Shown here: positions 4,076 through 62,864 of the stretch, in pieces
Layout: every line of letters begins with the position of its first letter
How positions within the stretch are numbered: the stretch's first letter is position 1
Notes under the pieces: model-generated
Told to the model about the DNA's origin: nothing
Seen by the model: the letters and a program-made list of their open reading frames with translations, nothing else
Databases searched by the model: none
Origin: Macrostomum lignano
Taxonomy: Eukaryota
Direction: 5' to 3'
DNA: 64,000 nucleotides
Assembly (NCBI GenBank): GCA_002269645.1
Contig: NIVC01002257.1
Span: forward strand, 125,353 to 189,352
Made by a program: the position numbers and the translations under genes

Positions 4076-5923
4076 CCCCGTCCCTCACTCTTAAAGTGTA
4101 GCTTAAAACAAATATCTTTGGTACAATGCAGCACAATATCGATGTAAACTTTTGTTCATAGCTGGTATGCCGGTTTATTGGTAATTTATAGATTAAAAAT
4201 TAATTGTAGTCCATAAACTGCAGCTTAAAATGGTACAAATTCTTAATTTTTTTCTGCCGCTACAAGCTTTGATGTCTACAGTTTCCACTCATAATATCAT
4301 CGAAGAAAGTTAGCTAGTAAAGTTTGCAAAACACTGGAGAGAAAGTGTGCAATGGCTCGCGTCATTCTATCCCGGGCCAACAGTGTCAATGCCATAATGA
4401 TGCAACCAGGGACTCAACCAGGCGATTCACTCAGTCCATGTTGCCGCTAAGTACGGGTGTCGCATCGGGCAGTCTGCTGTTTGGTCGCAAATCAATATCA
4501 CTGTTCTGAGCCTTCAGCACTCGCGACCCCGCCATCAGCAATCAGGATCGCCAGTCTGAGAGGATTTACGAGCTAAACGACATATTGAGACGGACAGACC
4601 ACGTCATTCTGACAGCAATCACCACAATCACCATGAAAGACCGACGCATTTGAAGAGTCGGCTCCGTAGACCATATTAGGGGTGGGGAGCACGTCCGAAG
4701 TGCATGGGGACTCGCTGGTCATGCATCGGGGACGGCACCAGACGCCAAGCGACTGCCCTAGACGTCAGAGCAGCTCAAAAGACAGCCAATGGCAGCCGAA
4801 GGACGGCAAAAAGAGCTACAAGGAGATGGTTAATTATTAAGGACTGAGCTGACAAACTGACGCTTCCATTATTGAAGTATTTTTCCCAGATTTTTACCTT
4901 CCTATTTTTAATTTTAAGGAAGACATTGTTAAATATTGTGCCACCGGCCATAGCCCATCGATGCATCAGTGAAATCTTTCTCCATAACGCACCATTATAA
5001 ATCAATGTACATCCACTACTCATTTACAACATAACAATCTCCTGTAAGTCGGCTTAGCACCAAAATATGCTCTAAATTTCGAGGGCTATGCGCTAGCCAA
5101 TTCTATTATTTCTGCTTCAAGCCAAACCTTCCTGGAAAAATGGGCATCAGCGCACAGCGCACCCTGTCTCCAATGCCGTCTTGGATAATTCCATAGGAAA
5201 ATAAAAACAAACCAAATATCCACATCCTCGTTGAAGTGGAGAAAAAACTATGAGTTTTATGCTATGAGCTATGAGAAGCTATGAGTAAGTGAATTTCGGA
5301 CGAAAATTTCTAAGAACAAGTGCTGCACTCTCATTGGACAAGAACTTCATGTAAAATAGTAAATACATGTAAACGGCGCGCACACAATGTCACATGAGTG
5401 TACGTACCTTTAACACTATAAATAATAAAGAACGGGAGTTCTACATACGATCAAAATTAGCTCGAGATCCTACGCTAAAAGCAGACTTGTAGTATTTTTT
5501 GAGACAAAGAATAACAAACAGGATCAAAACAATGTCGCAAAAAAAGACAGGCGCAGCCACGAACGTTATGAACATGATGAGCAACCTAACGACAGCGACT
5601 GAAGCTGCTAGCAAAATAGCAAGCACTGCAAGTAGCATCTATGATACTGTATCAGCTGTCACACAACAATCGCACGATATTCTGACGGAATTGACCAAGG
5701 AAGCCGCCAGCATCGCCCAAGCCGAGGTCAGTGATTTTCGAGACGCAATGCGAGACACAAATGCTTCTGGAGAAGATCTGAGGTCAAGATGTCTTGAGCT
5801 GAGAGAAAAGTGGCAGTCCTTTGAAAATTACATTTACGAGACCTTTGAACGAAAGGAAATTAGTCGCGCTGAAGTTCAAAATTGCATTCAGCTGCTGCAG
5901 TTAATGCTGGAGAGTGCCGGCAA

Positions 5924-6164
5924 CACAGCACCCATGGAACATCTTTTAGGGAGAAAAAAAGTACGAAGCAATCCATTCAACTTTTCTTGTTCCATAGACA
6001 CCTGTAGATGAAAAAAATGAAAAACAGAAAAAAATTTGCGATAGCTTCATGTTTTATTGCACTTTTTGAATTTTCATGTACTTTTAATTGGCAAAACAGG
6101 AAGACATTCCATAAAAACTGCCATTTCAGCTTACAGGTCATTAGCGAAATAAATTCAGCTACCT
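5924..6164 (+). repeat. left terminal inverted repeat of the Chapaev-type element
   Basis: Reverse complement of 8965-9205. Confidence 0.93.
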
Positions 6165-6668
6165 TTCTATCCCATACAGCCAAATAAATAACTAAAGACT
6201 TGTTTACATTGAAGCTAGTATCTCTGCGAGTCACACACTGTTCAAATTAAAGTACCACTAGTCTTGCACAAAGTCTAGATTGATTTGAGTATTCAATGAT
6301 CTACAGAGTAACTAAACCTTTATTTCTGGCTCACATAATCGATAGCATTTGATTGGCCAAATCGTTGTACACGCAGCTAAGCTGAATGAAATCAACCAAT
6401 CGATTGCTTAACTTTAGGCGGCCAGTTTTTAACTTAACAGATGTACATCCACCAGACATTTACAATGCTGCACTCGTCTGAAAATTTCATGCCCGCAAGC
6501 AGGCCAACTATAAGGTTCAATGAAAATGTACAATCATGCACTACAAACTCAGTAAACATCTCACAGTGATAGAAAAATCCACTCTATCCTAGCATAAAAC
6601 AACGCCAACAAACTTCAAATAAAGTTATATTCTATCATCAGTTTTATAGCACTTTTGATAGCTCTGCA

Positions 6669-8774
6669 ATGCCTTCAACGGCTTTAACTCATTCGGAGAA
6701 TCGATTGAAAGTATGCCTGATCTGCTTTAAAAAAGGAGCATCTCATGAACCTATTCGTGACGCAAATCTACAACGCATCAATCGAAATTTTATCGAAGAT
6801 ATTGACATCACTGATGAAAGTCTTCCAGCATCTTTGTGCGCTCGGTGTCGCAAACTTCTTCTTGATGTCGACAGTGGTAGAAAGCCAGTGGATGCTCTGC
6901 CCCAACCATATGACTTCTCAAAAGTGAAGCAGACAGCAGTCACACGACAGAATCCCCTGTGCCATTGTGATCTGTGTGAAGTCGCCCGGATGACTCCGAT
7001 TGGTCAGGGGCTTGGCTCTGCCAAAGTTCCGGCTCACCCGATTGGCCGGCCGAAGAAATCCAACGACCAGCTGCCTGTAGCTTTGCCAGCTAAAATCTGC
7101 CGACGCTGCCTTTGCATCCTCCGGCGAGGAGTCAGTCACTGCTGTACCATCACTCAACGCAGGGAAAACCTGTGCACAGAGTACTCTGTGGACCAGCGAG
7201 GGGCTGAGATGCACGCAGCCAAAGTAATCAAAAGAAAAGCTGTCGATGCGCACGGTGCTGCTCCAATTCAACTGGCAACTCGTGGGCGTAATCTAACACT
7301 CAGTCTCCTAGCCCCATCACAAGCTAAAAACTCGGCTGCTTTTTACGATTCGCCGATCTCAGCATCTGAAATGAGCTGCTTTCAGCAGGCGCTGAGTCTA
7401 AGCAGACGGCAAACGAGGACTGCAGCGCAATTCTTCCGTAAGTGGAAAGGGCGGAAGTCAATTGAAGCAGGCCTGGAGTCGAAGTTGCAGCAGCTGGACA
7501 GCAGCCTCAGCGAGTATTTTTCGGTGACCGATGCAGAGTTTGAGATCAGCGGCGGTCAGAAGAAGCGCTGCTCCGTCGTATTCTGCAGGGACCCAGCAGG
7601 TCTCATTGATTACATGCTGCAACACCGGAGGGCGCCTTTTGGTTCTGAGTTCGTTGCAAAAGTTGGAATGGACAGTGGTGGTGATTTTCTGAAAATCTGT
7701 CTCAGCCTCATAGTTGACACATCAACTGATGCAAGTGACTTCGAGACTCAGGCTGCCGATGTCTGCTCAAGCCACTTTGCCGAAGGAGGTGTCAAGAGAC
7801 TCATGCTACTAGGAATTGTTCAAGGAGTGAAAGAAACGTATGCCAACCTTAAGACCATGCTGGATCTTTTGAATATGAAAGGCGTCCGATATTACTGCTC
7901 GATGGACATGAAGATGGCCAACATCTTCCTTGGGCTTCAGGCATGCAGCAGCTTGCATCCGTGTCCTTGGTGCGAGTGCAGGCGGAACCTTTTTGGTGAT
8001 GCGCATCGTGACATCCAGCTGCGGACGCTCGGTGCCATTCGAAGAAATGCAGCCCAGTATCAGCAGGCAGCTCGGCAGCATCGGGGCAGTTTGCAGCTTG
8101 GAGCTGCCAACTTCAAGAATTGTGTGCATGATCCACTAACAGATCTGCCTGACGACACCGAGGTTCTAACGATCGTGCCTCCAATGGAACTGCACCTGAT
8201 GCTGGGAATTACCAACCGGCTGCTGGAAGAACTGGACACGCGACTCCAAGCGACAAATGACTGTTCGGTGCGCATTGATGACTGGCTTGCTCGACTGGGA
8301 GTTCAGCGACAGCCTCAGCATGGCAGGCAGATAAACGGCAATGACTGCGCAAAGGTGCTGGAGTCAGTAGATCAGTTGGAGCAGATGGTCCGAGACTGCG
8401 ATGCTTGCCTGGGAATGCCCGTTGTGTTTGCTCTGCGGTGCTTTCGAGAGGTAAAGAGAACCTGCTTCAGCCTTGAACTGCGCGATGGCTTCGAGACCGC
8501 CGTGGCTCACTTTGCTCAGGCTTACGCGGATCTCGGTATTAGCACCACGCCGAAGGTGCACGCGCTGATTGACCACGTGGTGCCTTTCCTCTCAAGCGCT
8601 GACAACAGGGAAGCCCGACATGGACTAGGCTTTTGGTCTGAGCAAGCTGGCGAAGCTGTGCATCGCGATTTCAACAGCCTGTGGTGCCGCAGCTACAAAG
8701 TTAGTCCTACAAATCCTCAGTATGCACAACAGCTGCTGAAGTGCACTGTTGCGTACTGCTCGCGGCATTTGTGA
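6669..8774 (+). CDS. Chapaev/Transib/RAG1-like DDE transposase, 701 aa, intact
   Basis: N-terminal H-x7-C-x2-C...P-x3-C-x2-C...C-x2-C...GRPKK zinc finger (Chapa/RAG1-NTD-like). Core motifs: KVGMDSGG (D1), SMDMK...HPCPWC (D2 + CxxC), PMELHLMLG, TPKVHALIDH (HxxxxH), GFWSEQAGEAVH (E). Confidence 0.9.
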   Translation: MPSTALTHSENRLKVCLICFKKGASHEPIRDANLQRINRNFIEDIDITDESLPASLCARCRKLLLDVDSGRKPVDALPQPYDFSKVKQTAVTRQNPLCHCDLCEVARMTPIGQGLGSAKVPAHPIGRPKKSNDQLPVALPAKICRRCLCILRRGVSHCCTITQRRENLCTEYSVDQRGAEMHAAKVIKRKAVDAHGAAPIQLATRGRNLTLSLLAPSQAKNSAAFYDSPISASEMSCFQQALSLSRRQTRTAAQFFRKWKGRKSIEAGLESKLQQLDSSLSEYFSVTDAEFEISGGQKKRCSVVFCRDPAGLIDYMLQHRRAPFGSEFVAKVGMDSGGDFLKICLSLIVDTSTDASDFETQAADVCSSHFAEGGVKRLMLLGIVQGVKETYANLKTMLDLLNMKGVRYYCSMDMKMANIFLGLQACSSLHPCPWCECRRNLFGDAHRDIQLRTLGAIRRNAAQYQQAARQHRGSLQLGAANFKNCVHDPLTDLPDDTEVLTIVPPMELHLMLGITNRLLEELDTRLQATNDCSVRIDDWLARLGVQRQPQHGRQINGNDCAKVLESVDQLEQMVRDCDACLGMPVVFALRCFREVKRTCFSLELRDGFETAVAHFAQAYADLGISTTPKVHALIDHVVPFLSSADNREARHGLGFWSEQAGEAVHRDFNSLWCRSYKVSPTNPQYAQQLLKCTVAYCSRHL

Positions 8775-8964
8775 CCTGCTTTAATAGTAAGAACATTTTC
8801 TTTTTCTAAGTCTTTTTTTGTTTGCAATAGCAGATAGAAAAAATGTGTCTTTAAGCTATCTATAATATTTGTTTATGGTAAAAACTTATTTAAAAAACAC
8901 TATTTAAAGTAGCCTAATGCACTGCATATAAGTTTTTTTATCGGCCTGATAGTTTAAGTTAAGC

Positions 8965-9205
8965 AGGTAGCTGAATTTAATACGCTGATGACCTGCAAGC
9001 TGAAATGGCAGTTTTTATGGAATGTCTTCCTGTTTTGCCAATTAAAAGTACATGAAAATTCAAAAGGTGCAATAAAACATGAAGCTATCGCAAATTTTTT
9101 TCTGTTTTTCATTTTTTTCATCTACAGGTGTCTATGGAACAAGAAAAGTTGAATGGATTGCTTCGTACTTTTTTTCTCCCTAAAAGATGTTCCATGGGTG
9201 CTGTG
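8965..9205 (-). repeat. right terminal inverted repeat of the Chapaev-type element
   Basis: Reverse complement of 5924-6164. Confidence 0.93.
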
Positions 9206-11078
9206 GCAACTGTGGCAAGTGCTACAAAGAGTTCAGAGAGAAACTGAATCGTGCTGTTGACGTAGGGTCTCGCCTCGCAGAGCGGTGCAGAGTCGCAGCC
9301 GCGGAAAGCAGGTCCGAAGCCTCGACCACGAAGGCTCGCGGATATGGCGCTGCAGGAGTTCTAGGCGCTGCCGCTCTTGGCTTTCTCACCTTTGCTACAG
9401 GAGGCGTCGCTGCGGTTGGAGCTGCTGCAATGGGTGCAGCCGCGGCTGGCGCGGGAGCCTACACCTACGATAAGGCGAAAAAACTGGAAAAACTGGCTGG
9501 TGAGTTTGACGACCAAAGAGGAAAGCTTGATGATGCTCTGCGGGATCTGAACAGCTTGGGAGATTCCATCACTGGTCTGTTTACCGTCACCGAGAAAATG
9601 GTCGAGAACATGGAGATTGCCCTGAGGATCTTCAAGGAGCAGGAACGCCTGAAGCAAGAGAACGAGGACAATCGAATCAAGAATGAGAAGATGGCTCTGG
9701 AAAACGAAAAAATGAAGGAGGAACAGGAAACTCTAAAGCAGGAGGCGGAAAGAAGGAAGCAAGAAAATGATGAGATGAAGCAACAACAAGAAAGCATGAG
9801 ACAGAGAAATGAAGAATTGGAAGAGCGGCTCAAGAAGCTGGAAATCGAAAAAAATAAGAAAAAAAGCAAGGCTTGCCGCAACATGTGAGGAGCAAGCAAG
9901 ACTCATAGGTACAATTAACTGACACTTGTGATGCGGTTTTTTTTAAAGTTAAGACTTTAATTCTGGCTTGACAGTTACAGCACTGGCTTGCAGTTTATAA
10001 TTAAAAGTACTCACTCCTATAAACTTTTTGAGGCCTTAGTTAAAATGGCACCATCTTAGCTAACTAGCCGACTATTAAGCTATATGCTATTACTGTTTTT
10101 ATTTTTAAGTTTCTCTTACAGTAGCTAGATACGCTAAAGTACGAGCATATGTGTTGCAGGTCTTTAATGTAAGCCTTCTCAAACGGAGTCGTAATGCTTC
10201 GATTCACTTGTAGCTGATTAGCTCGTATTCTTCAAAAACTGTCATTTATTATAATTTAAAAACTTTATTTATCTATGCAATTTTTTTCATCTTTTTTAAC
10301 GCAATTAATATTACGGTAATCTTTCTGCAATAATTTTCCTGTACAGTATGTCAGAAAGAATCATGTTATACCAAAGTCGAAAGGCGAAAATGTATCTTGT
10401 GAATTATTGTTTCAATCGTTTGATTCCAAAATTGTGTCTTCACGTCGAAGTACATTTCTGTAGTTTTAGACGAAATGTAATAGTGGTAGTTATATACTCT
10501 TACTAATATACGCTTGTATCTTTCTGCAATCGATTTTACCAAACCGCCGTCCATTTTTTGTAAGCTATTTTTTTGTCATAGTTCTGCTCCTTTATCAGAG
10601 GAAAAGGAATGCAAAGACTCGGAAGCAGCAGGCAAAGAAAGAAACAGCAAAGCAGACGAAACAGTACAGAAAATAGAAAAGGAGAACTTTGTCTACATGT
10701 ACACTCGCTGACTCAGTGTTTAAAAGAATTCTCTCACTTGAGCTAAAAAGAGCTGCATTTCAATGCACATACGCTCGTATAACGTACTATTTACAGGCTT
10801 ATAAACCCAAGAAGAATATAGAAACGAAATAACCCTGTTTAATGAGTTTGGAGATAGATGCGAATCGAACTTCGAGGAAAAAAGTTTGTCGTCACCAATT
10901 ATGTAAATTAATAATGTATTAAAGCATTTAACACTGCCAAAATCAAGCTTTCTGTGTTTTCAAGTCTCTGCTACTTATATGCTGGAATCGGACATAATAT
11001 ACTTTCTTATGGTTGCAGCATTGGAGGTAGAAATTGATTGCTACGAGCGTAGCGCCTTTTTATCCAACTGCGAGTAGG

Positions 11079-11157: not shown

Positions 11158-11169
11158 AGGTGTCTATCT

Positions 11170-20829: not shown

Positions 20830-21250
20830 CGACCTTCGGGACCTTCAACGGAGTGCCACCACGCGGCCCCGACGAGCTGCACCCCCAACATCGTGATTTT
20901 TCTATCAAGGCAAAAAACCAGGCATGTTTGCGTATTATACAATGGTCCTGTTCCATGTTCAGCATTCAGCTCTGTCTGGACGACCTTCGGGACCTTCAAC
21001 GGAGTGCCACCACGCGGCCCCGACGAGCTGCACCCCCAACATCGTGATTTTTCTATCAAGGCAAAAAACCAGGCATGTTTGCGTATTATACAATGGTCCT
21101 GTTCCATGTTCAGCATTCAGCTCTGTCTGGACGACCTTCGGGACCTTCAACGGAGTGCCACCACGCGGGCCTGATGAGCTGACACCGCCAACATCGTGAT
21201 TTCTTCATCAAGGCACCAAAACCAGGCATGTCTGCGTATTATACAATGCT
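20830..21250 (+). repeat. 151-bp tandem repeat (2 full + 1 diverged copies); 1 full + 1 partial inverted copy at 22627-22904
   Basis: Unit starts cgaccttcgggacc at 20830, 20981 and 21132 (period 151). Inverted ends at 22753 and 22904. Confidence 0.9.
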
Positions 21251-21403: not shown

Positions 21404-23130
21404 TTACTCGTAATTTGGTGCACAACGTGCGCAGTAATGGTGACTCACTGTCATTTCCATCGCAGTGTGTCTTCGGCAAATTCCTTCGTCACATATGCAA
21501 CACTTCCTTGTTGTCCCACTCAAGGCACGCTTCTCGTCCTTTGACTTTTGTCTCGCGCATGTTACACAGCTTTCTGCCACCAACTGACACCACAGCCACC
21601 GCTTCGCGTGCCTGTTCCTTAATCATTTGCTCGTCGTTGATTTGACAACCTGCGAGCTGGAACATGAGCCGGTGATGATTGGACAGGTTCTGAAGAAGAG
21701 CGGCCGATTACGAGCGCTCCTCGATCAGAGGTTGCAGAAGTTGCGCAGCTGCCTTGCACTGGAACTCGTTGCGATAGTTCGGCGAGGCGCAGAGCTCCGG
21801 GTGCGCCAGTCTCCAAATGGCAGCGGCATTCACAGCTGCTATGTTGAGTACGCCGCCGGAGAAGATTGCCTTCTCGCATGAGTCGGACTTTCGCTTGCAG
21901 TCGGATGTGCGGAACATCCTGTTGCAGGCGTCCGTGCCACTCTTGGTAGAATTGTAGTACGTGACTATTGCTACCGGCTTGCCATTGGGAAGCAATTGTC
22001 TGTCGTGGTGCATGGTGGACAGCAACATCACGTTTCGGCCCGCCTTGGGGCAGTAGTACACACACGTGAGCTCCTCAGAAAACCGGAATTCGCTCGTGTG
22101 TGGAGCCACGTTTTGAGTTGAATTCTTGATATCGGCTGGCAGGCCACCACGAGTGCGCACCACTGTTCCAAGAAACGTGAATCCCATTTACTGTACCAGT
22201 GTCGTCTGAATGGATCAGCCATGCGGCAAACAACTTGCTCACCACTCAACACCTCTGAGCCCTTGGCCACCCGAGCATCAGATTCCTGTGATGCAAAAGT
22301 AGTAGACAGCAGTGTTCCTTTACCAGTGCAGATTTCCGCATTGAACACATAGCGGATGTCCTTGTCATCCTGAATCTCTGGATTCCCAGCCGATGTCAGC
22401 AGGAACAGCTTTTCACCATTGCGACCGGGCTTCTCCTTCAGAAAGACCGTGAAGTCACAGTTCACACCCCAGTAGACAACCAGAGTTTCGTCGACGCAGG
22501 GGTATGGCCCAGAAAGAACAGGATGGCGCAGCTGACTGAAAAAGGTGTCCTACAGGCGTCGGATGCCGCAGAGCTTGTCCGTTGTGGCAGTCCGCTGACG
22601 ATGTTCGGCAGTTTCAAATTTAACATGGTGCAGGACCATTGTATAATACGCAGACATGCCTGGTTTTGGTGCCTTGATAGAAAAATCACGATGTTGGGGG
22701 TGCCCGCTCGTCGGGGCCGCGTGGTGGCACTCCGTTGAAGGTCCCGAAGGTCGTCCAGACAGAGCTGAATGCTGAACATGGAACAGGACCATTGTATAAT
22801 ACGCAAACATGCCTGGTTTTTTGCCTTGATAGAAAAATCACGATGTTGGGGGTGCAGCTCGTCGGGGCCGCGTGGTGGCACTCCGTTGAAGGTCCCGAAG
22901 GTCGCCTGTATGTCTACAGGTCAGCCTAGAGGGTCGCCATTGTCCATTTCATTCACTGATTATGTCTACTGACTGAATGCTGCATGCAGAAGAGGATTCT
23001 TCCATTTCAGTTTTGGGAACGCAGCCGTCTCTGAGATGCCGATCGGATGCTTTTGTTGAAGGTCTTGACGGTCGCCGCCGATGCTCCAGACGGTGATGAA
23101 GGGGACCCTGGTGCCTAGGATGCTGAGAAC
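21404..23130 (-). mobile_element. decayed piggyBac transposase pseudogene (frameshifted)
   Basis: Fragments in order: TDKLCGIRRL...CVDETLV...FLKEKPGRNGEKLFLL...RYVFNAEICTGK; FLGTVVRTRGGLP; VMLLSTMH; KPVAIVTYYNSTKSGTD; and the C-terminal cysteine-rich domain RKCCICDEGICRRH...CARC ending at a stop at 21404-21406. Confidence 0.85.
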
Positions 23131-24447
23131 AAAGGCCTCTACGCAGATGGACCCAGATTATTGAGCCAATATGGATTCACCATAAAGGTTTATACAGTGT
23201 AGTGTTGGTTGTTCTTGCCACGAGTGTCTTCGACAAGAATCGCTGAATATCTCGACGATGCGGACGTCGGGTGACTTTGAAAGTTAGTTCGTCGGAAAGG
23301 GCGGAAAATTTTGATCCACATGGTGGGCTTTTACGAAAATCGGTGGTCTTTCTACTGTGAATGCTTCTATAGAAGTGAGGTCCCGAATCAAAAATACACA
23401 TTCCGTACAAAAGGCTGTTTTAATTGGCATTCTTGGGTGAGACTGAGACTTTCAGTGCGGAGATAGCGAGAATGTCACTAACTTTTTCCAGAAATAATCT
23501 ATCAGCTTCTTGCACTCCCCAAGACAGAATTGAATGCGGCCCTTATTTGAAGTATTAACTAAAATGGTTGATTTTGACAAGGTCTTTACTGTGATATTGT
23601 TCAGACCCGGTTTGTTTAATTCTTGAAACCCAGATGCTAACAAGTGGTTACGAGTAAACGATAACGAGTTAAACGAGTTGAGTTCCTTTTTGTAAGTGTC
23701 GTGAATTATTTTCTATTTCATGAGAAACTGGTAAAAGATTTTTATATTCAGGGAAAAAACTCCTTAGAATTTCGAGTATGAAGAGAAGCTGTGTATACTT
23801 AATTGAAAACAATTTAAAAGCAATATGCGAGCATTGCGAGCAATATGTAAAAGCATTGTAAATACAGACTGCCTTAACTTACTCGGCCTCGGACTACAAA
23901 GATCATGGCTTCAAGTAGATGACGGTCAGAAACTTCTTGAAATTTAGACTGTTTATACTCGTATAAATACTTGGATTACAACTGTGTAAATATTATTTTT
24001 TCATTAGTGGTCCTTAGTTTTCACTCATAGTATCTTAACTAAAAAATTACTACTTGTAGAATGTACATACACACAAGTTTGAGCATTAACAAGCTTTTTT
24101 ACTAAAACTCGTTATAAAAATTATAAAAATATAGCACGACACTGGCTGCACTTACATATCTCCGTTGCCGCTCGTAGCGGCGGCAGCAACCAAATTTTGA
24201 CTGCTGGCTTGACTTGAAACGATAACTTGTTATGTCTCTAGCGCTAAATCTGTAAGAGAGAGAAGAATGGATTGATATTCATAGGAAAGATAAATTGTTT
24301 GGAGTAGTACGTGTACAATACATCATTGTCTAATAGCGGTAGTGCCTTTGGAAGTGGTTCTAGTGTCGAGTTGTGAGTTATTGTGTAACTAAAGAGCTAT
24401 TATTCCAAGTAGCTTTGCTGCAGCAGCAGCAGTAGGAAGTATTAGTT

Positions 24448-24935
<488 letters not shown>

Positions 24936-25709: not shown

Positions 25710-25956
25710 GGTGAGTTCGACGGCATAGGAGGAGAACTCGACAATGCTCTGGATAGTCTGAGCGATTCGGTGATATACATGTACAGTCGCCGGTTTATTC
25801 ACGGTCGCCGAAAGTATGGTTAAGAATATGGAGATCGCGATGAAGTTCGTCAAGGAGAACGATAGGCCGAGAGAGGAGCAGGAAAGCCTGCGAAAAAGAA
25901 ATGGATAGGAGCTAGAAAGACATCGTGCTTCTGGCGATGCAGCTCCCAAGAAGTAG
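25710..25956 (+). pseudogene. pseudogene fragment paralogous to the C-terminal half of the 5532-9888 gene
   Basis: Translates GEFDGIGGELDNALDSL...(frameshift)...VAGLFTVAESMVKNMEIAMKFVKE...EQESLRKRNG*EL versus GEFDDQRGKLDDALRDL...ITGLFTVTEKMVENMEIALRIFKE...QESMRQRNEEL at 9499-9830. Confidence 0.82.
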
Positions 25957-42391: not shown

Positions 42392-43141
42392 TTGCCTTTC
42401 ATTGGTAAGCAAAACAAACGAAAAAGCAAAGAGCAGCTTCTCTGGTTAAGCTCACAATATGCTTATAATTTCAGACCCATTTACCAGTGGCTAAATGGGC
42501 CTGTCATCAAGGCAGAATCTGCAACAGTCTTTTCCGGTGCAGATATCTTACGGTGCAGCTTATACGCATGCTTTACTGTTGGATTGATTTTCTATATTCG
42601 GTTTTGTAAGCTGGATTATCGGCACCTGCACTATGAGGCCTTCCTACTTGCGATGGTTTTCGCCTTTGTATTTCTAATTGTTCCTGTGGAATTCTACCGA
42701 GAATACCAATGGCAAAGGGAGCTTGCTCAAGCCCGCTGCTCTGATTGGTCAGTGACAAGCTTGCTGTCTAATTGGTTGTTTAGTGTTAGCCAATCAGAGT
42801 GCTCCGTTGGCTTGCTCACCATTCTGTGGCGTGTGTCTATTCTTCGCGTGCTGCTGCTCTGTGCTTGGGATCTGCTGGTATTTCCTGTTGAGGTTGTCAC
42901 CAATGCGGCTGGAAGTTTGCTATCGGTGATTGTTGCTTTTGCGCTGTGGCAGCCGTTGGTAGCTGTTGCTACGCTGGTTGTTGCTCTAGCAATTCTGGGC
43001 TACGGGCTACGGGCTCGAAAGCGACGCCTAGAGGTGGCGCGGAAAATTGAAGATTATCAACAGATGCAGCTTCGTCAGTCTCTGGCTTCCTCTGGCTGTA
43101 AGTTTGCTCAAGGCAACAATATCTATTATTCGAGGTACTGA
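42392..43141 (+). CDS. CLCC1/MCLC-like multi-pass membrane protein paralog 2 (probable acceptor ttcag| near 42474; true start likely in an upstream exon)
   Basis: TM-TM-EFYREYQWQRELAQARCS...SQSECSVGLLTILWRVSILRVLL...FPVE...AG...LWQP-TM. This pattern recalls the CLCC1 core (Y..A...C...W...C...P.W...L....P....G....P...P). Family call made from memory of CLCC1, not a search. Confidence 0.68.
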   Translation: MPFIGKQNKRKSKEQLLWLSSQYAYNFRPIYQWLNGPVIKAESATVFSGADILRCSLYACFTVGLIFYIRFCKLDYRHLHYEAFLLAMVFAFVFLIVPVEFYREYQWQRELAQARCSDWSVTSLLSNWLFSVSQSECSVGLLTILWRVSILRVLLLCAWDLLVFPVEVVTNAAGSLLSVIVAFALWQPLVAVATLVVALAILGYGLRARKRRLEVARKIEDYQQMQLRQSLASSGCKFAQGNNIYYSRY

Positions 43142-45038: not shown

Positions 45039-45776
45039 GTGATGCTTCAGTGGCTATCCAGCCACCTCAACGCCGGATCTGCTGCCTCTCCCGCCAGTAG
45101 CTCAGGCAGTCACGCCTCAGCCGTTATCCTATTCGCCTGCGCACTGGGCACCCTCATGTACTTTCTGTGGGTCTCCGGCCTCGCCTGCCCCGGCTGCGCC
45201 TACTTAAAATTACGTCGGCGTCTCAGACTGTGGCTTCTGCTTTTATTCATCTTCGCCTTGATGACTTCCATCGCCGTGGAGCTGGTGAAAGAGTATCACA
45301 GACAGCTGGATTTTCTGAGGAACGACTGTTCCAGCTGGTCTATAGCCGGTCTCTTGAATAGTTTGGTTAGCTGGCGTTCAGAATCCAGTCAGGTTGATTG
45401 TTCAGCGAGCTTGTTGAGTCCACTGTGGCGGATTTCACTACTGCGGGTGCTGCTGCTAAGTCTGCAAGATCTGCTAGTGCTGCCTGTTGAGATTGTTTGC
45501 AGAGCGGCTGGAAGAGGCCTGACCGCATTTATGTCCTCTGTGCCTGTGCTATGGCAGCCGGTTGTACTTGTAGCTCTCGTGCTTCTGTGCTGCATCTGTC
45601 TGTTCTGCTTCTTTGGCTACCACTTTCGAGCTCCGCTGATTCACGTTGGACCGGTAGCTCCTGCAGCTAGAGCAGTCGACAATGATAGAGGCAGCGACAG
45701 TGTCTGCAGTATCTGTGTCCGTCGGCGAGAACGACGTCGAATGCAGCGCCCTCCGAGAGTGGGTCGGCGAGTTTGA
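45039..45776 (+). CDS. CLCC1/MCLC-like multi-pass membrane protein paralog 3 (ATG 45042)
   Basis: ELVKEYHRQLDFLRNDCSSWSIAGLLNSLVSW...VDCSASLLSPLWRISLLRVLLLSLQDLLVLPVEIVCRAAGRGLTAFMSSVPVLWQPVVLV...FFGYHFRAPLIHVGP. This is the closest of the three to the recalled CLCC1 core. Confidence 0.72.
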   Translation: MMLQWLSSHLNAGSAASPASSSGSHASAVILFACALGTLMYFLWVSGLACPGCAYLKLRRRLRLWLLLLFIFALMTSIAVELVKEYHRQLDFLRNDCSSWSIAGLLNSLVSWRSESSQVDCSASLLSPLWRISLLRVLLLSLQDLLVLPVEIVCRAAGRGLTAFMSSVPVLWQPVVLVALVLLCCICLFCFFGYHFRAPLIHVGPVAPAARAVDNDRGSDSVCSICVRRRERRRMQRPPRVGRRV

Positions 45777-51728: not shown

Positions 51729-52633
51729 CAGGGGCGCCATCGCTACACAAGGGGCGCGATTGCTATCCAAAGGGTGCCGTCGCTTTTCAAGGGACGCGAT
51801 TGCTATCCAAAGGGTGCCGTCGCTTTTCAAGGGACGCGATTGCTATCCAAAGGGTGCCGTCGCTATTCAGGGGGCGCGATTGCTATCCAAAGGGTGCCGT
51901 CGCTATTCAGGGGGCGCGATTGCTATCCAAAGGGTGCCGTCGCTATTCAAGGGGCGCGATTGCTATCCAAAGGGTGCCGTCGCTATTCAAGGGACGCAAC
52001 TGCTATCCAAAGGGTGCCGTCGCTATTCAGGGGGCGCGATTGCTATCCAAAGGGTGCCGTCGCTATTCAGGGGGCGCGATTGCTATCCAAAGGGTGCCGT
52101 CGCTATTCAGGGGGCGCGATTGCTATCCAAAGGGTGCCGTCGCTATTCAGGGGGCGCGATTGCTATCCAAAGGGTGCCGTCGCTATTCAGGGGGCGCGAT
52201 TGCTATCCAAAGGGTGCCGTCGCTTTTCAGGGGGCGCGATTGCTATCCAAAGGGTGCCGTCGCTATTCAGGGGGCGCGATTGCTATCCAAAGGGTGCCGT
52301 CGCTATTCAGGGGGCGCGATTGCTATCCAAAGGGTGCCGTCGCTATTCAGGGGGCGCGATTGCTATCCAAAGGGTGCCGTCGCTATTCAGGGGGCGCGAT
52401 TGCTATCCAAAGGGTGCCGTCGCTTTTCAGGGGGCGCGATTGCTATCCAAAGGGTGCCGTCGCTTTTCAGGGGGCGCGATTGCTATCCAAAGGGTGCCGT
52501 CGCTTTTCAGGGGGCGCGATTGCTATCCAAAGGGTGCCGTCGCTATTCAAGGGACGCGATTGCTATCCAAAGGGTGCCGTCGCTATTCAAGGGACGCTAT
52601 CCAAAGCGCGCCATCGCTATTCAAGAGGGCGCC
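51729..52633 (+). repeat. 40-bp minisatellite (cgctattcagggggcgcgat tgctatccaaagggtgccgt), ~22 copies, built from two related 20-mers
   Basis: Direct reading. Confidence 0.96.
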
Positions 52634-54057
52634 AGCCCAGAAGCACCTTTCTAGGTTTTCCTTATTGCTTTGGTGAATTTAGTAACATATTAGAGATTTA
52701 GTATATTGTGAATATATGTAAGTTCAATAGAAATACTCAACAGGTGAGCAGCAGAGCTCTCAGACTAAAGTAACATATGGCAGAATACAAAAATGAAGAC
52801 CTTTTCTATTAAAAATACAACAGTGACAGGATCGGGAATTTTCAATAAGCCAGACAAAGTTAATTAAAATAACTCACTGAAAGAAAAAGAGGGTAACGAC
52901 AGACGCGCAATAATTACTCAAGAACACTAAAGTCGTGCTTGTAGAAGCAATGAAGTGATTGATATCCAGAGCTTTTACGAGCAATTCTATGTGGGTAACC
53001 AGCTGTGTGCTTTAAAATACAACTACTTGCTCAGTAAAAGTATTAGAAGTATTATCCCTTAATTTCCCAGATCCGCTATAGTTTTAACAAAGGCAGTTAA
53101 CAAAATTACTGCTGCATGAGCATCAGAACGTGAATAAATAGCAATAGAAGTTTCAGTTAGCAAAGTTAAAAATATTAATGTCATTACGCTCGTAAAAAAG
53201 ATTAAAACACAGACATATATTCTTTGCATATTACTGCGAACAACTGTCGCTGCAGATAAGTTACAGCATTGGAGCAGAGCAGCCTATCGGTTAACAGTCC
53301 TAGTCCTAGCTCTAAAGCCACACCAAATTGGCCCAGGGCTTTTTGTCGCGCGAATCACAACCACGAGGGCCAAACCCCAGGGCACAAGACTGTACATGCC
53401 TGATGATGAGAAAGTCAGGACCGCTGTAAACCCTGTGTGAGAGTGTGTGAGTGCTTTCCTGATCGCGTATGCATTTTGCCCAGCGCAGATATCATTCCAT
53501 TATACTGTTCCGCCTATAATAATAATTGTGGTAGAGCAGTCACATGACGAAATTTGTATACAGGGTAGATTTACACATTGGGAGCGATTGGGAAATAATG
53601 GTGAAAAATACTTGCTATCTTGTCTGGGTGAAAGTACGTATTATACAATGCTGGTTTGGGACAATGTCTTCGAAGGCGTCGCCCTCGTGCAAATATTATT
53701 AATGAGATACATAAAAAGAAATAATTTTTTAATCAGCGGATTATTGCGGATTTAAAAAAGCCTTACCACCAATAAACAAAGATTATAAGTAATAATGTGA
53801 GGGGCTATACAGAGCTGAGCAGGAAAACGTTGACACGATCTGTGCTTTCTGTAGATTTATGTAGATTAGGGCCTAATTCAGCCTACTGGGAAGAAAAATA
53901 TAAGCATAAGTTGTTATACTAATGTATATTATTTTTAATAAGGCGCGCAGTATTTTCAAATAGGAGATTTATGCTGACCAATTATGTCCACAAGCCTGAG
54001 TGTTACTGGCCTTCCGATGTTTGTTTGGCTTTCTGGAAAAATGCGAAATTATTACAT

Positions 54058-56562
54058 TTAGTCAGTGTTACCATTTTTTCGCAAGAATATATCAAATACT
54101 TCGAATAATCCTTTGCTCACCTTTATGGTAGGAGCAGATTCAGGAGTATTTTCTGGGTTAGTACAGAAGCACGCCAAGTAATCTTGAATATGCTTTCTGA
54201 TAGCGAAACTCCTGGGAATGTAAGTTGGCTGAAAGCTTTGCATGGCAGCCCTGACATCGAAGAATATATGGCCAACGACGAAGATTCCTTTGTAGGCGTC
54301 TTTTTCAACACGAGCTCTTTGCTTGATTCCCTCGCAAAGAAATTTCTTCCTTTCGTCACAAGTGCACGCCATTGTCCTGAATATGTCATACTCATTGACT
54401 CCTGTCGACTGCATGCCACTCGAGCACCAAAACTGCACTCTTTTCTCCTTGCAGCGTTTCCCATCGCAGTTGTAAATAATTGCTGTCAGCACTCTTCCCT
54501 CCGTCGGTTGACACGGCTGGCACTTTTCCGCTAAGCCTTGAAGCATTACTGAACTTGATGCGGGGCTTGAGTCCATGGAGCTGTCGCCTCGCGAGTAGTG
54601 TAAGATGTCGCTCTGCCTGTCCGAGTAAGTTTTCACCGACGCTAGCAGAGATTTCCGGTTTTTATAGCGATCCGATTCCGATTCATGCAGCGAGAAGTCA
54701 AACTGTATCTCGATTTGCTTATACCGCTTGTATCTGAAGCCGATCGGAGCCACCTCATTTCCTGTGTCATCACTAAATGGAATACGCTCGTGGCAGCACG
54801 TTTCAATGAGGCACAGATACTCGCTCAGTAGTGTTTCTGGGTTGAGTTTTGCCTTTTTATTACGGCTAGATACTTCAGAAACTTTTCGCTTCATAGCAAA
54901 GAACTCCACCAGGCATGGAATTTCAATGCATGCATTGGCTTTCACAACTGAATCAAGTGAGCCAGCTGCGTCACAAAGGGTCAGGTAGAGAAGCGCATTG
55001 TGCACAGGCTCGTTTTTCAGTGCCCGCGACGGCTCCAAGAAAATTTTTCCCAATTCTGCATCGGGATCAACAAAAATTTCCCAGGACTCCTCCTTCGGTG
55101 ATTTTGATACTCGGTGTTTAGATGTCCGGTTTGGTCCTGGCTGTGTTTCTGAGCTCGGTTCGCAGGCAAAGCGCAGTAACTCATAGATGCAGTCTGAGTA
55201 GCGGTCCTTGCCTTCTAAGTTCAGCCCACTGTAGCACAGTATTGTCAGCAGAGCCAGCCGCAGCCTCAGCCGATGCAGCTGACTCGGCAGCAGGCTCTGT
55301 CTGATGCTCACTTCTTTGGTTAACTTTGTCAGAAAGAATTCGGCGATCCAGTTTTGGAGTTCCTCAGCCTGAAAATATTTACAAATTCATGGATTTCAAC
55401 ATGCACAGAAAATTTTATTCCACCTGAACTCATGAACCTTCTGCACTGCAGTGAAGCTGAGCACTTACCTGTTTATTAGGTTCCGTGTGTTCTTCGTTGT
55501 AGCTGAAACGTTAAGATATCAAAATTTTTCAGTATGCATGATTTCTTAATTGCATTCTAATTTTCAGTATGACAGCAATTGCTGTGTTGCATTTATAAAT
55601 CAGACTTACCTGAAGAAACAAAGTGTAGCAGCGCAGGGAATGAGAACGAACTGAACAATTTCTGTTTGATCTTCTGTCGACTGATTTTCCTTGCTCTTGT
55701 CATCAAGAAGTTTCACAACTTCAATTAAAGGTGCTCCATAAAGCTGCTCAGCGGGCAGCTGGTGTATTTTTAGTGATTCGGAGTAGAGATGCTCTTCGGC
55801 TCGTTCTTTATAGGTTTTAGCCAAATCGATATAGGTGTCTGTCTCGTCATAGAGCAAGCAGACCGGCATTTTGTACAGAGCAGGCAGTTTTTTAGGTATT
55901 GCTCTGCTGCACTCAATCATGGTACCAAAGGTCAAGAAATTCCCGTGATTTACCTTCTGTGGTTCATTCGACTGCATGAGCTTTGCACAGAACAGGCCGA
56001 ACCAGGCCAAAAACTTCTTCATTGTTTCACCATTTTTTCCAGAGAAAATGTCGACAATAGAGTCAGGTTTGCAATTTATCACAATTTCCTTACATTTTCC
56101 TGCGTAAAAAAGCCGCAACGCCAAGTTGCACAGATCGTTGAGCAAAACGGTGGTCTTGGCTCGGTCTTTTTCACTTGTCCTGTCGTAGTTATTTACACTC
56201 AGTGTATATATGCATAGTGGATGGAGGGGAGCCATCCAGTGAGTCGCGAAAGTTTTAGATTTAGATCCTGGGAAGAAAGTTTGCTTAATCTTCTCTTTAG
56301 TTTTGCATTGTTTGGCCTTACCATTTTCAGGAGACTCGCAAGCAATAATAATAATCATGTCGTCAGCAGCTCCTTGATCGAAGGAAACTTTCAATGGATC
56401 AGCTTTAATTCCGGTAGCATTCCTTGTTCGGTTGCACACTGCATTTCCGAGTGCTAGCAGTGATCGAATTCTCAATTCTTGGGCTCTCCGTATCTGTTCT
56501 GAGGCTCTTTTGCTGTCAGCAACTTCTTTTGATTCAGCCATGAACTGTTTACGCCTATTCAA
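54058..56562 (-). CDS. uncharacterised ~758-aa protein; exons 56541(or 56562)-55610, 55502-55469 (34-nt microexon), 55368-54058
   Basis: Two long ORFs joined by canonical sites (ag|gtaagt at 55610 and 55469; ttcag| at 55503 and 55369) into one 2277-nt frame from ATG 56541. No recognisable domain. Confidence 0.78.
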
Positions 56563-57633: not shown

Positions 57634-57919
57634 GTTAAAAAGGACTCGTGTGCTTTTTAGACCACAAAGACAAACAAAACTAAAACTCGGAAAACAATTT
57701 ACTTTTCATGCAGGTATCTTCGTCTCGCTAACAATCAGGAGATGGTAAGTTATCTATCATGCCTTTTCAAGTGAATATTAAACGCAGAAGGCAAACAGAC
57801 TATATAGGATAAGAAAGAGAGCCTTAAAGCGTTTGGCTTTAAGCTACTCTTCCTCTAATCGACTACATAAGTAATCGTTTAGCTGGGGTACGAACAACAA
57901 CAACAAAAAAACAACAGCG

Positions 57920-59420: not shown

Positions 59421-59518
59421 AATGCACCTCAGACATTCTAACCACAGAATGTAAATTAAACGGCATTTATTATTTACAGATCCTGTGCCTGTGGCAAAGA
59501 CAGAGTCAGACAGAACCT

Positions 59519-59614
59519 TAGGCATTCAGTGCTGGCTCCTTATCTTTACAATCGGCGTGGCCTCATGAGGTAAAACTCGTTTCCATTCCAGATTGCTAAT
59601 TATAGAACTCCTTG
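59519..59614 (+). repeat. ~96-bp dispersed element, copy of 3907-4002 (reverse complement)
   Basis: taggcattcagtgctggctccttatctttacaatcggcgtggcctcatgaggtaaaactcg...attatagaactccttg. Confidence 0.8.
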
Positions 59615-61364
59615 ACATGGAGTCTCGTGTTGGTTGACTAAAGTATGGAGTGCATGTAATTTCCTCCATGGACTAAAGTCGCATTTAGATTGTCAAAAGC
59701 GATACTAAAGCATCACAAGCTGGAATATAGAACTGATGATTATTGCGCTCCTTTACATGCTTTCAGCCTCTTACGGTATGCTAAAACACAGAAAAGTTTA
59801 TTTTACGAGCTACGAAAGCACGTGCTAACTAAACAAAATTAACGTAAACAAATCTGAACGAATATGATTCATTGTACGAGTACAAACCAGGAAAAATGCG
59901 CTAAAGTGAAAGGCACAAATGGGAGGAGAGAAATTCCTTATTTGGAAATTTGTTATGAAATGAAGGGCACAGGAGAGTTGCAAATTTTAGCTTAACAAAT
60001 TCAGACGATAACAGCTATAGCAAAATTTTATTGCATGCTGCTGATGCGATATCTTTCCATGGTTGTGATATACAAGCACCATGTGTTTTATAACTCTACG
60101 TAGCAACTACTACAATACAAAAGTAGCAGAATTACGCCCTTAACAGTACGACAATTTATTCTATCATCTTGTCGAACTTTTTGCTGCACCAGAACGGAAC
60201 AACGCATGCAGACCCTTTCCCCCGCCAAAACAGCAAGCATTAATAGATTATGCCAGAATGATGCGGAATGCAATTTTTCTTTAGCAATACAGGCATTTGG
60301 ATTTTACGTCTATGCGCTCTACTGCTAGTAGAAGCACGAATCGATTTTCTTTTATTTCTCAACTGTCTCTCAATCCCTCAATCAGTCCATGAATTCAGTT
60401 AGCCAGATCTGCATTCTAGTTGTACACCAGGTAGCAAGCGGTGAATTTCTTAATACAAGCTACAATGATTTTAATGCAACGTCTATTGTTCTGTACCGTT
60501 ATAGGCAGCGCAGTGTTTGGCGACACACACAAAAAATCGGTTTAGAAAATCATTCGGAGACATCTCCGTGTATCTGAGTTTCTTCAATTAGGCGGGCGCG
60601 GGGCGCCATGGGCGCCGCCGATCTCTGTGTGTCCTCAATCTCTAAGGCGAGGGGCCCGCATATTCCATATATATATAGATATAAATATAGCCGCATGCTC
60701 CCAGTCTTTGAAATCGGAGATTCACAATTGAACCTGCATGCTGCGCCACGGTCGGGTTGCTCTTTGGTAGATCGAAAGATCGCCGACTTAAAGACCTCTC
60801 GGAGGGGAGCCCGCATGTGGGAGGTGGGGTGGACAGGATTCGATAGAAAAAATCGGTGAACAGCATCATGGGGTATTAAGCTGGCATGCATCGAAAAACA
60901 CAAACTGTTGCCTTGATGAAATAGCCGCTATAATGTGCCGCAAGCAACCCACCCCCCGCGGTGCGCCACTGCCGCCTCGTTTGAGTTGCTTCTTCGTTCG
61001 CGCCACCCGCTGTCGGCCTTCCCCAATTTCGTTTCTTCCCAGATTTTAATCGGGGATCTTAGTCTTAAGCTCATTAAACCCGAGCCGGTGCACTGACAGT
61101 TTAACAAATTTATCATTGGAAGACTGAAGAAGCTTTATTTTAGCGAAATCTTTTAAGAACCAAAGCGTGGAGATTTAGTGAATTGGGCGGACGTGCATCT
61201 CTTTTTGTTATTATTGTATAGTTACGGTTGCTATGCCAACGGTACTTCCATCTATATTTCCAACTGGGAGCAGGCATGAGGGGAGAATTATTACAAAACT
61301 ATGAATTGCGGTAGAAAAATTGTTTGCAAAGCAAAAACTAACTTAACACACAGGGCGCACACGC

Positions 61365-62864
61365 ATGAGGTGCATAAAAATCACACTATACATACTCGCA
61401 GTACACTCTGGCGTTTGTTTTTCCCCATTATTTCAGGCAGACACAAAACGCTTGTGCAGATTGGCCAGCAAAGGCGAACACGAAGCTATGGGAAATTTGC
61501 TCCGAAACAAGCCGTCAATTGTAAGCAGCAAATACCCGCTTTACTCAGACCGCAGCGCTCTGCTGTGCGCCGCAGCAGCTTCAAAGCGCCACTACTCCCA
61601 GGGCGGTGAGGATCACACGAAATGTGCTGAAATCCTAGTCAGGTTTGGAGCTGATCTGAACGGCCAAGACTCCAAGTCTAACACGGTCCTGCACCTCTCA
61701 GTGAAGTCCAAAAATGATTCTTTGCTCAAGTTTCTACTTGGAAAAGATGTCAGAGTTGCTGACAAACGGAATAGTGACAGCAGCACTCCGCTTATGCTTG
61801 CCGCCGAATTCGACTACGAACAGCACGCGGAACTCCTGCTTGAGCACGGTGCGAGAACTGGCTCTGTAGACGAATTGTTTTATCACGCAGCAAAAGAGAT
61901 TGCAGAATCTGAAGGAAGCGAACGGGTGCTTGAAGTCATGCGCAACTTTGACCAAAGGCAAAGGGAAAAAGAGAAAGTGAGGGACAGAGAATATTTTTGC
62001 GGAGCACAAGTACCTCGATTTGAAAATATTTTTGCTGGCATTCAAGGATGCATTCATCAGATCACACATGAAGCAAATACAATTCGAAACAGCGTAAGCC
62101 ATGCAGTGCAAGAAAGCTATGAAATCTATATGGAAATGCCAGCATATTTCGACCACAATGCACAGCCACTTCGGAATGTTTTGACAGAAGCAGAAAGGCT
62201 GGGAAATGTGTTTCACGAGAAGTGCGAACGCTTGTCACAGCGGTGGGCACCAGTGGAACAGAAGGTGCTGCAATTGCTCGGACGTCCGCAATTAATCAAC
62301 AAGACCGATGTACTGAAGTCTATCAGTGACCTGAGAGAATGCATTCAATCGGCCGATGAGTGCAAACACAGCCTCTCACAACTGAAAGAAAAACTGTCAG
62401 ACGCCGCTCGCCTCAGTCGAGAACTGGCGGAAAAGTGTCGAAAGGAAAGCAGTGATGTTAACAAGCGGAGAGAGGAAAGGAATCAGGAGATCAGGAATCA
62501 GGAATCAGGAACCAGGAATCAGGAGAGAGGAATCTGGAAACAGGCATTAATTGCCGGCGCAGTTGGTGGAGCTGTAGGAGGCCCTTTAGGATTAATTGCT
62601 GGGCTGTGGTTAGGATCTGAAGATGCTGCTACGAGTGCTACGAGTGTGAGTGCAAGACATGTGGATGCACAAAGTTCAAACGAAGATCGAGATTTAGACC
62701 AGAGAAGACTTGAAGCGCTAAACAAATGCGCAGAACAAGCCGACCAACTCGAAAGAGACTTACGGTTCTCGATAAACGACCTATCCGAAAGTACTGCTCC
62801 AAACATCACCAGCAAGTGCTCTGAGGCCCTAGAAGTGTTGGAACAGCTGGCTTCAAAGTTTTAA
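61365..62864 (+). CDS. ankyrin repeats fused to a helical-bundle/hydrophobic-hairpin domain homologous to the 5532-9888 gene (probable acceptor ttcag| at 61436)
   Basis: N-terminal ANK repeats (DRSALLCAA, GADLNGQDSKSNTVLHLSV, STPLMLAAE). The C-terminal domain aligns with the rejoined 5532-9888 protein and carries ALIAGAVGGAVGGPLGLIAGLWLG. Confidence 0.85.
   Translation: MRCIKITLYILAVHSGVCFSPLFQADTKRLCRLASKGEHEAMGNLLRNKPSIVSSKYPLYSDRSALLCAAAASKRHYSQGGEDHTKCAEILVRFGADLNGQDSKSNTVLHLSVKSKNDSLLKFLLGKDVRVADKRNSDSSTPLMLAAEFDYEQHAELLLEHGARTGSVDELFYHAAKEIAESEGSERVLEVMRNFDQRQREKEKVRDREYFCGAQVPRFENIFAGIQGCIHQITHEANTIRNSVSHAVQESYEIYMEMPAYFDHNAQPLRNVLTEAERLGNVFHEKCERLSQRWAPVEQKVLQLLGRPQLINKTDVLKSISDLRECIQSADECKHSLSQLKEKLSDAARLSRELAEKCRKESSDVNKRREERNQEIRNQESGTRNQERGIWKQALIAGAVGGAVGGPLGLIAGLWLGSEDAATSATSVSARHVDAQSSNEDRDLDQRRLEALNKCAEQADQLERDLRFSINDLSESTAPNITSKCSEALEVLEQLASKF

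Follow-up and report, generated by a model that had tools for sequence, protein, structure and literature searches.

The window analyzed here is a 64,000-nucleotide stretch of transposon-rich metazoan DNA from the flatworm Macrostomum lignano (contig NIVC01002257.1, positions 125,353 to 189,352 of the forward strand), and our subject is a protein family represented in it by three loci. An earlier note on this DNA, made from the sequence alone, had described the family as unrecognized, as resembling alpha-helical pore-forming toxins (alpha-PFTs) in architecture, and as present three times. The loci are indeed related, according to BLASTP, tblastn, and a family hidden Markov model (HMM) that matches the window, read in six frames, at three places only, but one of them is a relic that retains a fragment; what the window contains is a disrupted gene, a fragment, and a domain fusion rather than three full copies (Table 1). 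Gene turnover is cleanly exemplified here: within 57 kbp, one copy was knocked out precisely and apparently recently by a transposon, another decayed to a fragment, and a third was joined to a further domain.

A disrupted gene, a relic, and an ankyrin fusion

The disrupted gene is split by a DNA transposon that has terminal inverted repeats of 241 nucleotides (98% complementary; 5924-6164 and 8965-9205) and carries an open reading frame (ORF; 6669-8774) of 701 amino acids (aa) with N-terminal CxxC zinc-finger-like motifs. At the left junction ...GCC GGCAAC runs into ACAGCACCC..., and at the right junction ...GGGTGCTGT runs into GGCAAC TGT..., the element ends being ACAGC...GCTGT; the target-site duplication is 6 bp (GGCAAC), or 4 bp (GCAA) with the termini drawn as CACAG...CTGTG. 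Under either parse, once the element and one of the duplicates are taken out, 5532-5924 continues in frame into 9211-9888, and the rejoined ORF codes for 356 aa without further lesion. The insertion is apparently recent. No second copy of the transposon was found within the window, and the 701-aa protein has no significant match in Pfam or the PDB, the best being a weak one to DUF1280 (E = 0.018).

The rejoined protein (aa 28 to 158) aligns by BLASTP with aa 232 to 359 of the ORF at 61365-62864 at 26% identity (E = 2e-11), and a tblastn search of the whole window with it gives E = 8e-10. The BLASTP alignment runs without a gap across the transposon junction (aa 131/132), which independently validates the rejoining of the split gene. 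Every aligned block that the earlier note had quoted is present, including ASSIYDTVSAVTQQSHDILTE / ANTIRNSVSHAVQESYEIYME, the residues C87, L90, W94, and E98, and a further block comprising S128, A129, C132, E141, K142, L143, L153, A154, E155, C157, and R158 (numbered as in the rejoined protein), and the similarity between the two long members is statistically significant. The relic retains only the helix that follows the hairpin: its positions 25710-25857 are 68% identical in nucleotide sequence to 9499-9639, with indels (E = 1e-8), and its translation, which needs a frameshift, is 50% identical to the post-hairpin helix over 40 aa (E = 2e-7).

In the ORF at 61365-62864, the family domain follows an ankyrin module that meets Pfam thresholds (Ank_2, E = 2.9e-17, 63.5 bits against a gathering score of 27.3; Ank, E = 8.4e-12). 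A 3' splice-acceptor-like tttcag at 61431-61436, preceded by a polypyrimidine tract and followed by GCA, lies inside this ORF, and because of it the first ~24 codons are probably intron, with the start codon in an upstream exon. A long Gly/Ala-rich hydrophobic segment had been described in both long members; the rejoined protein has one of 43 residues, but the ankyrin-fused protein has only a 25-residue zipper, and its region aligned to the second hairpin arm is polar. The ankyrin-only ORF, 4 kbp upstream, is a possible donor or sister of the fused module, and its sequence similarity suggests that the fusion arose from a local duplicate.

Table 1. Coordinates of the family loci and of related features in the window
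Feature	Position	Strand	Basis
Family gene, 5' part (aa 1-131: helix 1, helix 2, start of helix 3)	5532..5924	+	ORF and junction read; family HMM E = 9e-43
DNA transposon, 3.28 kb, inserted in the family gene	5924..9205	+	Inverted repeats, target-site duplication, and ORF
Family gene, 3' part (aa 132-356 and stop: rest of helix 3, hairpin, helix 4, charged tail, CaaX)	9211..9888	+	In-frame rejoin; family HMM E = 4e-60; relatives align ungapped over the junction
Uncharged Gly/Ala-rich hairpin, aa 175-217 (GYGAAGVLGAAALGFLTFATGGVAAVGAAAMGAAAAGAGAYTY)	9340..9468	+	Alignment, hydrophobicity, AlphaFold
Highly charged helical tail, aa 280-345 (56% D/E/K/R)	9655..9852	+	Composition and model
Polybasic stretch, CaaX-like box (KNKKKSKA-CRNM), and stop	9853..9888	+	Read directly
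URGCP/GVIN-type very large GTPase gene, intronless, 1874 aa	14688..20312	-	Pfam URGCP_GTPase E = 3e-88, URGCP E = 2e-33
Frameshifted family relic, post-hairpin helix only (GEFDGIGGELDNALDSLSDSV / AGLFTVAESMVKNMEIAMKFVKE...)	25710..25905	+	Nucleotide and protein alignment
Ankyrin-only ORF, 226 aa	56953..57633	+	32% identical (E = 1e-11) to ankyrin part of fusion
499-aa ORF: ankyrin repeats (aa ~45-170), then family domain (aa ~214-488)	61365..62864	+	Pfam; family HMM E = 2e-78
Single 25-residue Gly-zipper with central Gly-Pro (ALIAGAVGGAVGGPLGLIAGLWLGS), aa 394-418, in place of the two-armed hairpin	62544..62618	+	Alignment

Range and predicted architecture of the family

An exhaustive HMMER search of 1.84 billion representative proteins with a two-sequence profile returned nine matches, seven of which are true relatives (single near-full-length matches, E = 3.5e-19 to 6.5e-4). 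The other two, P0001 (6458 aa, from a beetle) and P0007, were rejected as artefacts that sum 27 and 6 repeats, respectively, at 4 to 10 bits each. All seven relatives have the same layout, and six are 267 to 323 aa long; the seventh, P0004, is predicted as a protein of 1171 aa, with an unrelated N-terminal region joined to a family domain of ~325 aa. Two are annotated in M. lignano as "hypothetical proteins" (PAA87463.1 and PAA60121.1), and the sources of the others are sequencing runs, a metagenome contig, and a UniParc record. Word-indexed protein searches returned nothing for aa 1 to 278 of the rejoined protein and nothing for the full nine-sequence alignment, where poly-Ala/Gly and E/K words probably swamped the candidates; with an alignment of the N-terminal domains, only P0006 was returned.

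No Pfam-A model reaches its gathering score on the family domain of any member, and the matches below threshold are scattered coiled-coil noise (RPW8, SLATT_1, DUF948, DUF677, IMD, and Baculo_PEP_C), none of which recurs convincingly. Sequence and profile searches of the PDB gave heptad-repeat noise only (coronavirus HR1, GCN4, and designed bundles), and a literature search on the M. lignano locus tags and on flatworm pore-formers found nothing relevant. Since no Pfam or PDB sequence match is significant and the relatives are named only as hypothetical or uncharacterized, the description as an unrecognized family is justified for the libraries searched (Pfam 2025 and the PDB).

Two further members adjoin known ones: an unannotated 325-aa paralogue 5.3 kb upstream of PAA87463.1 (L002, 3694-4671; family HMM E = 8e-48) and a more distant, previously unrecognized one 6.4 kb from P0008 (L003, 17362-18324, minus strand; E = 7e-6). 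The family is thus tandemly arrayed in at least two genomes. The M. lignano tandem paralogues are 58% identical, and their nonsynonymous (dN, 0.30) and synonymous (dS, 0.49) divergence gives a dN/dS of 0.62, reflecting weak constraint and fast protein evolution. Overall identity among members is 20 to 30%, and the stand-alone genes are intronless at the relatives' genomic loci. The family is a fast-evolving orphan of narrow range, seen so far in Macrostomum flatworms and in at least one other eukaryote, and the tandem paralogues, together with the transposon-cut copy, the fragment, and the fusion in the window, bear out the suggestion of birth-and-death evolution.

An AlphaFold2 model of the core (aa 1 to 280, from the nine-sequence alignment) has a mean predicted local distance difference test score (pLDDT) of 81 and a predicted template modeling score of 0.72, with helices at residues 2 to 57, 63 to 106, 112 to 185, and 201 to 279; the predicted fold is an elongated four-helix bundle with helices of 44 to 79 residues and an estimated length of ~7 to 8 nm. 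A single-sequence model of the full-length protein agrees, with helix 4 running on continuously to residue 354. Helices 1 to 3 and the first part of helix 4 are amphipathic (16 to 41% charged) and flank the hairpin, in agreement with the architecture first proposed. The hairpin segment itself has 43 uncharged residues, 65% of them Gly or Ala. In the predicted fold, helices 3 and 4 run on into the hairpin at one tip of the bundle. Each member has one and only one such extended uncharged stretch, always located between these two helices at an equivalent position; it is typically 40 to 46 residues long, with 40 to 65% Gly plus Ala and a central T/S-G-G turn, and G195, within the central TGG, is the sole invariant column of the nine-sequence alignment. 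In the core model, residues 179 to 206 of the hairpin have pLDDT below 50.

Membrane insertion energies were approximated without position dependence on a Hessa-type scale, and on these approximate values the best 19-residue hairpin window costs +0.4 to +3.8 kcal/mol across members; this is near the +3.2 of the ClyA tongue and for the most part higher than the approximately -5 and 0 kcal/mol of two ordinary transmembrane ORFs of the window. Kyte-Doolittle 19-residue means of 1.75 to 1.78 are within the transmembrane range. The product is made in the cytosol and, as the earlier note had said, lacks a signal peptide, the rejoined protein having no N-terminal hydrophobic segment, and we infer that the hairpin enters a membrane from the cytosolic face with both flanking domains remaining in the cytosol.

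The charged tail of the rejoined protein is predicted to be a coiled coil or a single alpha-helix, and tails of ~70 residues are also found in P0003 and P0004. The C termini of these two relatives, QSCVCSVL and QSCVCAIL, carry canonical CaaX boxes preceded by a further Cys. The rejoined protein ends in ...KNKKKSKACRNM, in which X = M fits farnesyltransferase and the two middle residues are non-aliphatic. For this polybasic-CaaX subfamily the C-terminal motifs predict prenylation, with or without palmitoylation.

Foldseek comparison with the PDB gave no match at an E value of 0.001 or below for either the core or the full-length model. Approximately half of the top 50 matches to the core model are toxins of the ClyA superfamily, all non-significant: MakA (7p3r), HblL1 (7nmq), ClyA (4pho/4phq), SmhB (7a0g), Hbl-B (2nrj), AhlB (6grj/6h2f), and NheA (4k1p), with E values of 0.055 to 0.3, template modeling (TM) scores of 0.22 to 0.39, and root mean square deviations of 12 to 24 Å. 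In the same score range are TTYH channels, F-BAR domains, chemoreceptor sensor domains, ExbB/TolQ, and designed maquettes, the last of these having the highest TM scores (0.49/0.64) and chemoreceptors as well as designed bundles exceeding the toxins in TM score, and against a viral library the core model matches tape-measure and tail-fiber proteins (E = 0.002 to 0.5). Scores at this level mean long helices, not toxin. In the ankyrin-fused member, a 15-residue segment (AGAVGGAVGGPLGLI) is identical to the ClyA tongue (AGAAAGVVAGPFGLI) at 10 of 15 positions, with an alignment score of 51 compared with 24 ± 5 in 2000 composition-preserving shuffles, none of which reaches it.

Neighboring genes and repeats

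Between the disrupted family gene and the relic lies the very large GTPase gene, whose 1874-aa ORF ends in a Cys/His-rich segment. An intact-looking mariner/Mos1-type transposase ORF of 372 aa is at the left end of the window (35-1153, minus strand; HTH_48, Transposase_1, and DDE_3), and a piggyBac-type transposase relic (21708-22187; DDE_Tnp_1_7, E = 8e-7) is flanked by 151-bp tandem repeats in inverted orientation (20830-21248 and 22622-22904), which probably formed the sub-terminal regions of a single decayed element. Located ~0.8 kb upstream of the family relic, an (AGT)n microsatellite (24438-24936, 166 copies) accounts for a spike in GC skew in the 24- to 26-kb bin.

Exons of a DEAD-box helicase are located at 31.2 to 34.9 kb. 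Two paralogous ORFs of 245 to 249 aa (42392-43141 and 45039-45776, plus strand) code for predicted multi-pass membrane proteins with motifs in common (e.g., LWR[VI]S[IL]LRVLLL) and no Pfam match, and are separated by repeat-rich DNA. A 31-bp satellite (41462-42369, ~29 copies) has its unit also in an M. lignano contig (L001, 6994-7035; 95 to 98% identity), and the non-coding repeats of the window match M. lignano contigs at 76 to 97% identity. A 40-bp tandem repeat (51732-52634, ~21.6 copies, 97% matches) is open in all three forward frames and gives rise to spurious ORFs of 313 to 354 aa. Just upstream of the ankyrin genes are two long ORFs without Pfam matches (54058-55311 and 55606-56562, both minus strand; 417 and 318 aa).

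Candidate functions and comparison with known systems

We tentatively favor the interpretation, with a probability of roughly 0.4 and by analogy with known membrane-active proteins, that the family products are conditionally membrane-inserting effectors. Such a protein would be soluble or peripherally bound at first, and in the subfamily of the disrupted gene a lipid anchor of the polybasic-CaaX type, terminating the long charged helix, could target it. The small-residue hairpin would then be buried in a cytosol-facing membrane, and the Gly/Ala faces together with the bundle or coiled coil could drive oligomerization, disturbing or permeabilizing the bilayer in a manner functionally analogous, not homologous, to that of ApoL, Bcl-2-type, or ClyA-type proteins. 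In the fusion, the ankyrin module is plausibly a sensor or regulatory domain, and the hairpin is shortened to a Gly-Pro zipper like those of the ClyA tongue and C19orf12. An effector role is favored because the hairpin is marginally hydrophobic on the approximate Hessa-type scale, and because the CaaX or Cys-rich C termini of one subfamily make little sense on a membrane-locked protein. It is also favored because tandem duplication is accompanied by a dN/dS of 0.62 at only 58% identity, because pseudogenization and ankyrin fusion have occurred within 57 kbp, and because a URGCP/GVIN-type GTPase gene adjoins. The recurrence of ClyA-superfamily toxins among the non-significant Foldseek matches and the resemblance of the ankyrin-fused member's 15-mer to the ClyA tongue are further reasons.

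We note, however, that several observations weigh on the other side. Searches of Pfam and the PDB, Foldseek, and hhalign matched no pore-former significantly at the level of sequence, profile, or fold, and the toxins fit the model no better than generic long-helix proteins. The ClyA-like 15-mer is present in none of the 10 other members, and a phmmer search of the PDB with it does not retrieve ClyA. Being confined to one member and missed by an unbiased search, it is rejected as homology and is read as a recurrent Gly-Pro zipper motif. The hairpin is modeled with low pLDDT, neither middle residue of the window gene's CaaX box (CRNM) is aliphatic, and a CaaX box is missing from most relatives. 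The GTPase neighbor may be a coincidence, and no expression, localization, or activity data on the family were found in the literature.

About equally defensible, although we prefer the effector interpretation, is that these proteins are constitutive, non-lytic scaffolds or tethers, the hairpin anchoring them permanently, as a monotopic or two-pass element, to the endoplasmic reticulum (ER), the outer membrane of mitochondria, or lipid droplets. From there the bundle and the charged coiled coil would extend into the cytosol as a structural or tethering module, and in the CaaX subfamily the far tip might contact another membrane. Anchored scaffolds or tethers account for most cytosolic proteins that combine a central hydrophobic hairpin with coiled coils. 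This is the commoner fate of such architectures, and none of the results contradicts it. An ordinary transmembrane-anchored coiled coil, the outcome that the earlier note had said would refute its proposal, is compatible with the results. Both termini lie on one side of the hairpin, with a charged helix of ~10 nm leading to the lipid-anchor motif, the Gly-Pro zipper of the ankyrin-fused member weakly matches C19orf12, a non-toxic organelle membrane protein, and the Foldseek matches to non-toxin bundles are equally good. A perilipin-domain gene 2.7 kb downstream of the M. lignano member P0006 (L001, 13523-14867) bears on an ER or lipid-droplet anchor and may be a coincidence. On the other hand, the hairpin arms are only marginally hydrophobic on the approximate insertion scale, a CaaX anchor seems redundant on an integral membrane protein, and rapid turnover, tandem duplication, pseudogenes, and a very narrow range are unusual for core structural proteins.

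A more specific proposal, which we regard as rather unlikely, is that flatworms have their own class of intracellular alpha-helical membrane-permeabilizing effectors, soluble four-helix bundles that are prenyl/polybasic-delivered or ankyrin-regulated and that would insert the Gly/Ala hairpin to form pores or to lyse pathogen-containing or organelle membranes. Within that proposal, and with similarly low expectation, the family, encoded next to a very large GTPase gene, would have arisen independently as an equivalent of ApoL/GBP-type cell-autonomous immunity or MLKL-type cell death.

It is improbable that the proteins are soluble helical-bundle adaptors acting through protein-protein interactions, with the Ala/Gly segment a buried or flexible linker that never enters a membrane. 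Marginal hydrophobicity, a very high Ala/Gly content, low AlphaFold confidence in the segment, and the polar second arm of the ankyrin-fused member are consistent with this, but a charge-free stretch of 40 to 45 residues is conserved in position in 11 of 11 members despite 20 to 30% identity, its central Gly is invariant, and the Kyte-Doolittle means are above the usual transmembrane threshold. Least likely is that the family is truly but very remotely homologous to the bacterial ClyA/Hbl/Nhe/AhlB/MakA superfamily, either through ancient common descent or because flatworms acquired it horizontally: the order of elements is the same (long helices, a hydrophobic tongue approximately two-thirds along, and a return helix), the stand-alone genes are intronless, and the Foldseek share and the tongue-like 15-mer point the same way, but all toxin matches have E values of at least 0.05, TM scores of 0.39 or less, and root mean square deviations of at least 12 Å, there is no Pfam HlyE or HBL signal, hhalign against ClyA gives a probability of 0.4%, and the 15-mer is absent from the other members and missed by the unbiased search.

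If the effector interpretation is correct, this would be a new animal family of helical membrane-inserting proteins without detectable relatives, another independent use of a helical bundle plus small-residue hairpin against membranes, and a handle on cell-autonomous defense or regulated cell death in flatworms, in which innate-immune effectors are poorly known. If the proteins are anchored scaffolds, it is a lineage-specific membrane protein family, locally useful for annotation of Macrostomum genomes. Either way, the family is new to Pfam 2025 and the PDB.

The likeness to alpha-PFTs and apolipoprotein L that the earlier note had drawn is an analogy of layout, not a shown relationship. In the AlphaFold and Foldseek comparison toxins recur but are non-significant (best E values of 0.04 to 0.06, TM scores of 0.2 to 0.4), hhalign of the family alignment against Escherichia coli ClyA gives the 0.4% probability noted above, and Pfam ApoL, HlyE, and Bacillus_HBL are not among the hmmscan matches listed for window proteins (E values up to 1 to 10) or for members (E values up to 0.05). 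In its predicted layout the family resembles ClyA, Hbl, Nhe, AhlB, SmhB, YaxB, XaxB, and MakA: an elongated antiparallel helical bundle of ~280 to 350 aa carries a single hairpin (the tongue or head of the toxins) that is Gly/Ala-rich, marginally hydrophobic, and similarly placed, and a return helix follows. The ankyrin-fused member alone also has the 10/15-identical GxxxGxxxGPxGLI motif of the ClyA tongue. It differs in having no detectable sequence or profile relationship to that superfamily and TM scores of at most 0.39, in having four helices in its predicted bundle compared with five in the ClyA tail domain, and in that some members carry a long charged tail with a CaaX box and one carries ankyrin repeats. 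The superfamily is also bacterial, whereas these proteins are eukaryotic, encoded by intronless genes, and predicted from sequence to be cytosolic.

In vertebrate APOL1 to APOL6, a helical bundle at the N terminus is followed by a hydrophobic helix-loop-helix and then by a zipper-like C-terminal helix; most are intracellular and lack a signal peptide, with fast-evolving, tandemly duplicating genes. The predicted layout of the family is coarsely similar in the order of its elements, and its members, likewise predicted to be intracellular and without a signal peptide, also evolve fast and duplicate in tandem. Unlike the APOLs, its members do not have Pfam ApoL (PF05461) among the matches listed for them, no APOL chain is among the PDB sequence or Foldseek matches listed, and the taxonomic range differs. 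The Gly zipper of C19orf12 (PF20721) can be aligned with 25 residues of the ankyrin-fused member (GAVGGAVGGPLGLIAG; E = 0.016 to 0.033), and both are small-residue-rich motifs of cytosol-facing membrane association. The match, however, covers 27 residues at 14 to 15 bits compared with a cut-off of 30, it is not seen with other family members, and C19orf12 has nothing corresponding to the flanking helical bundle. The design itself, a helical bundle plus a small-residue hydrophobic hairpin, is of a known kind.

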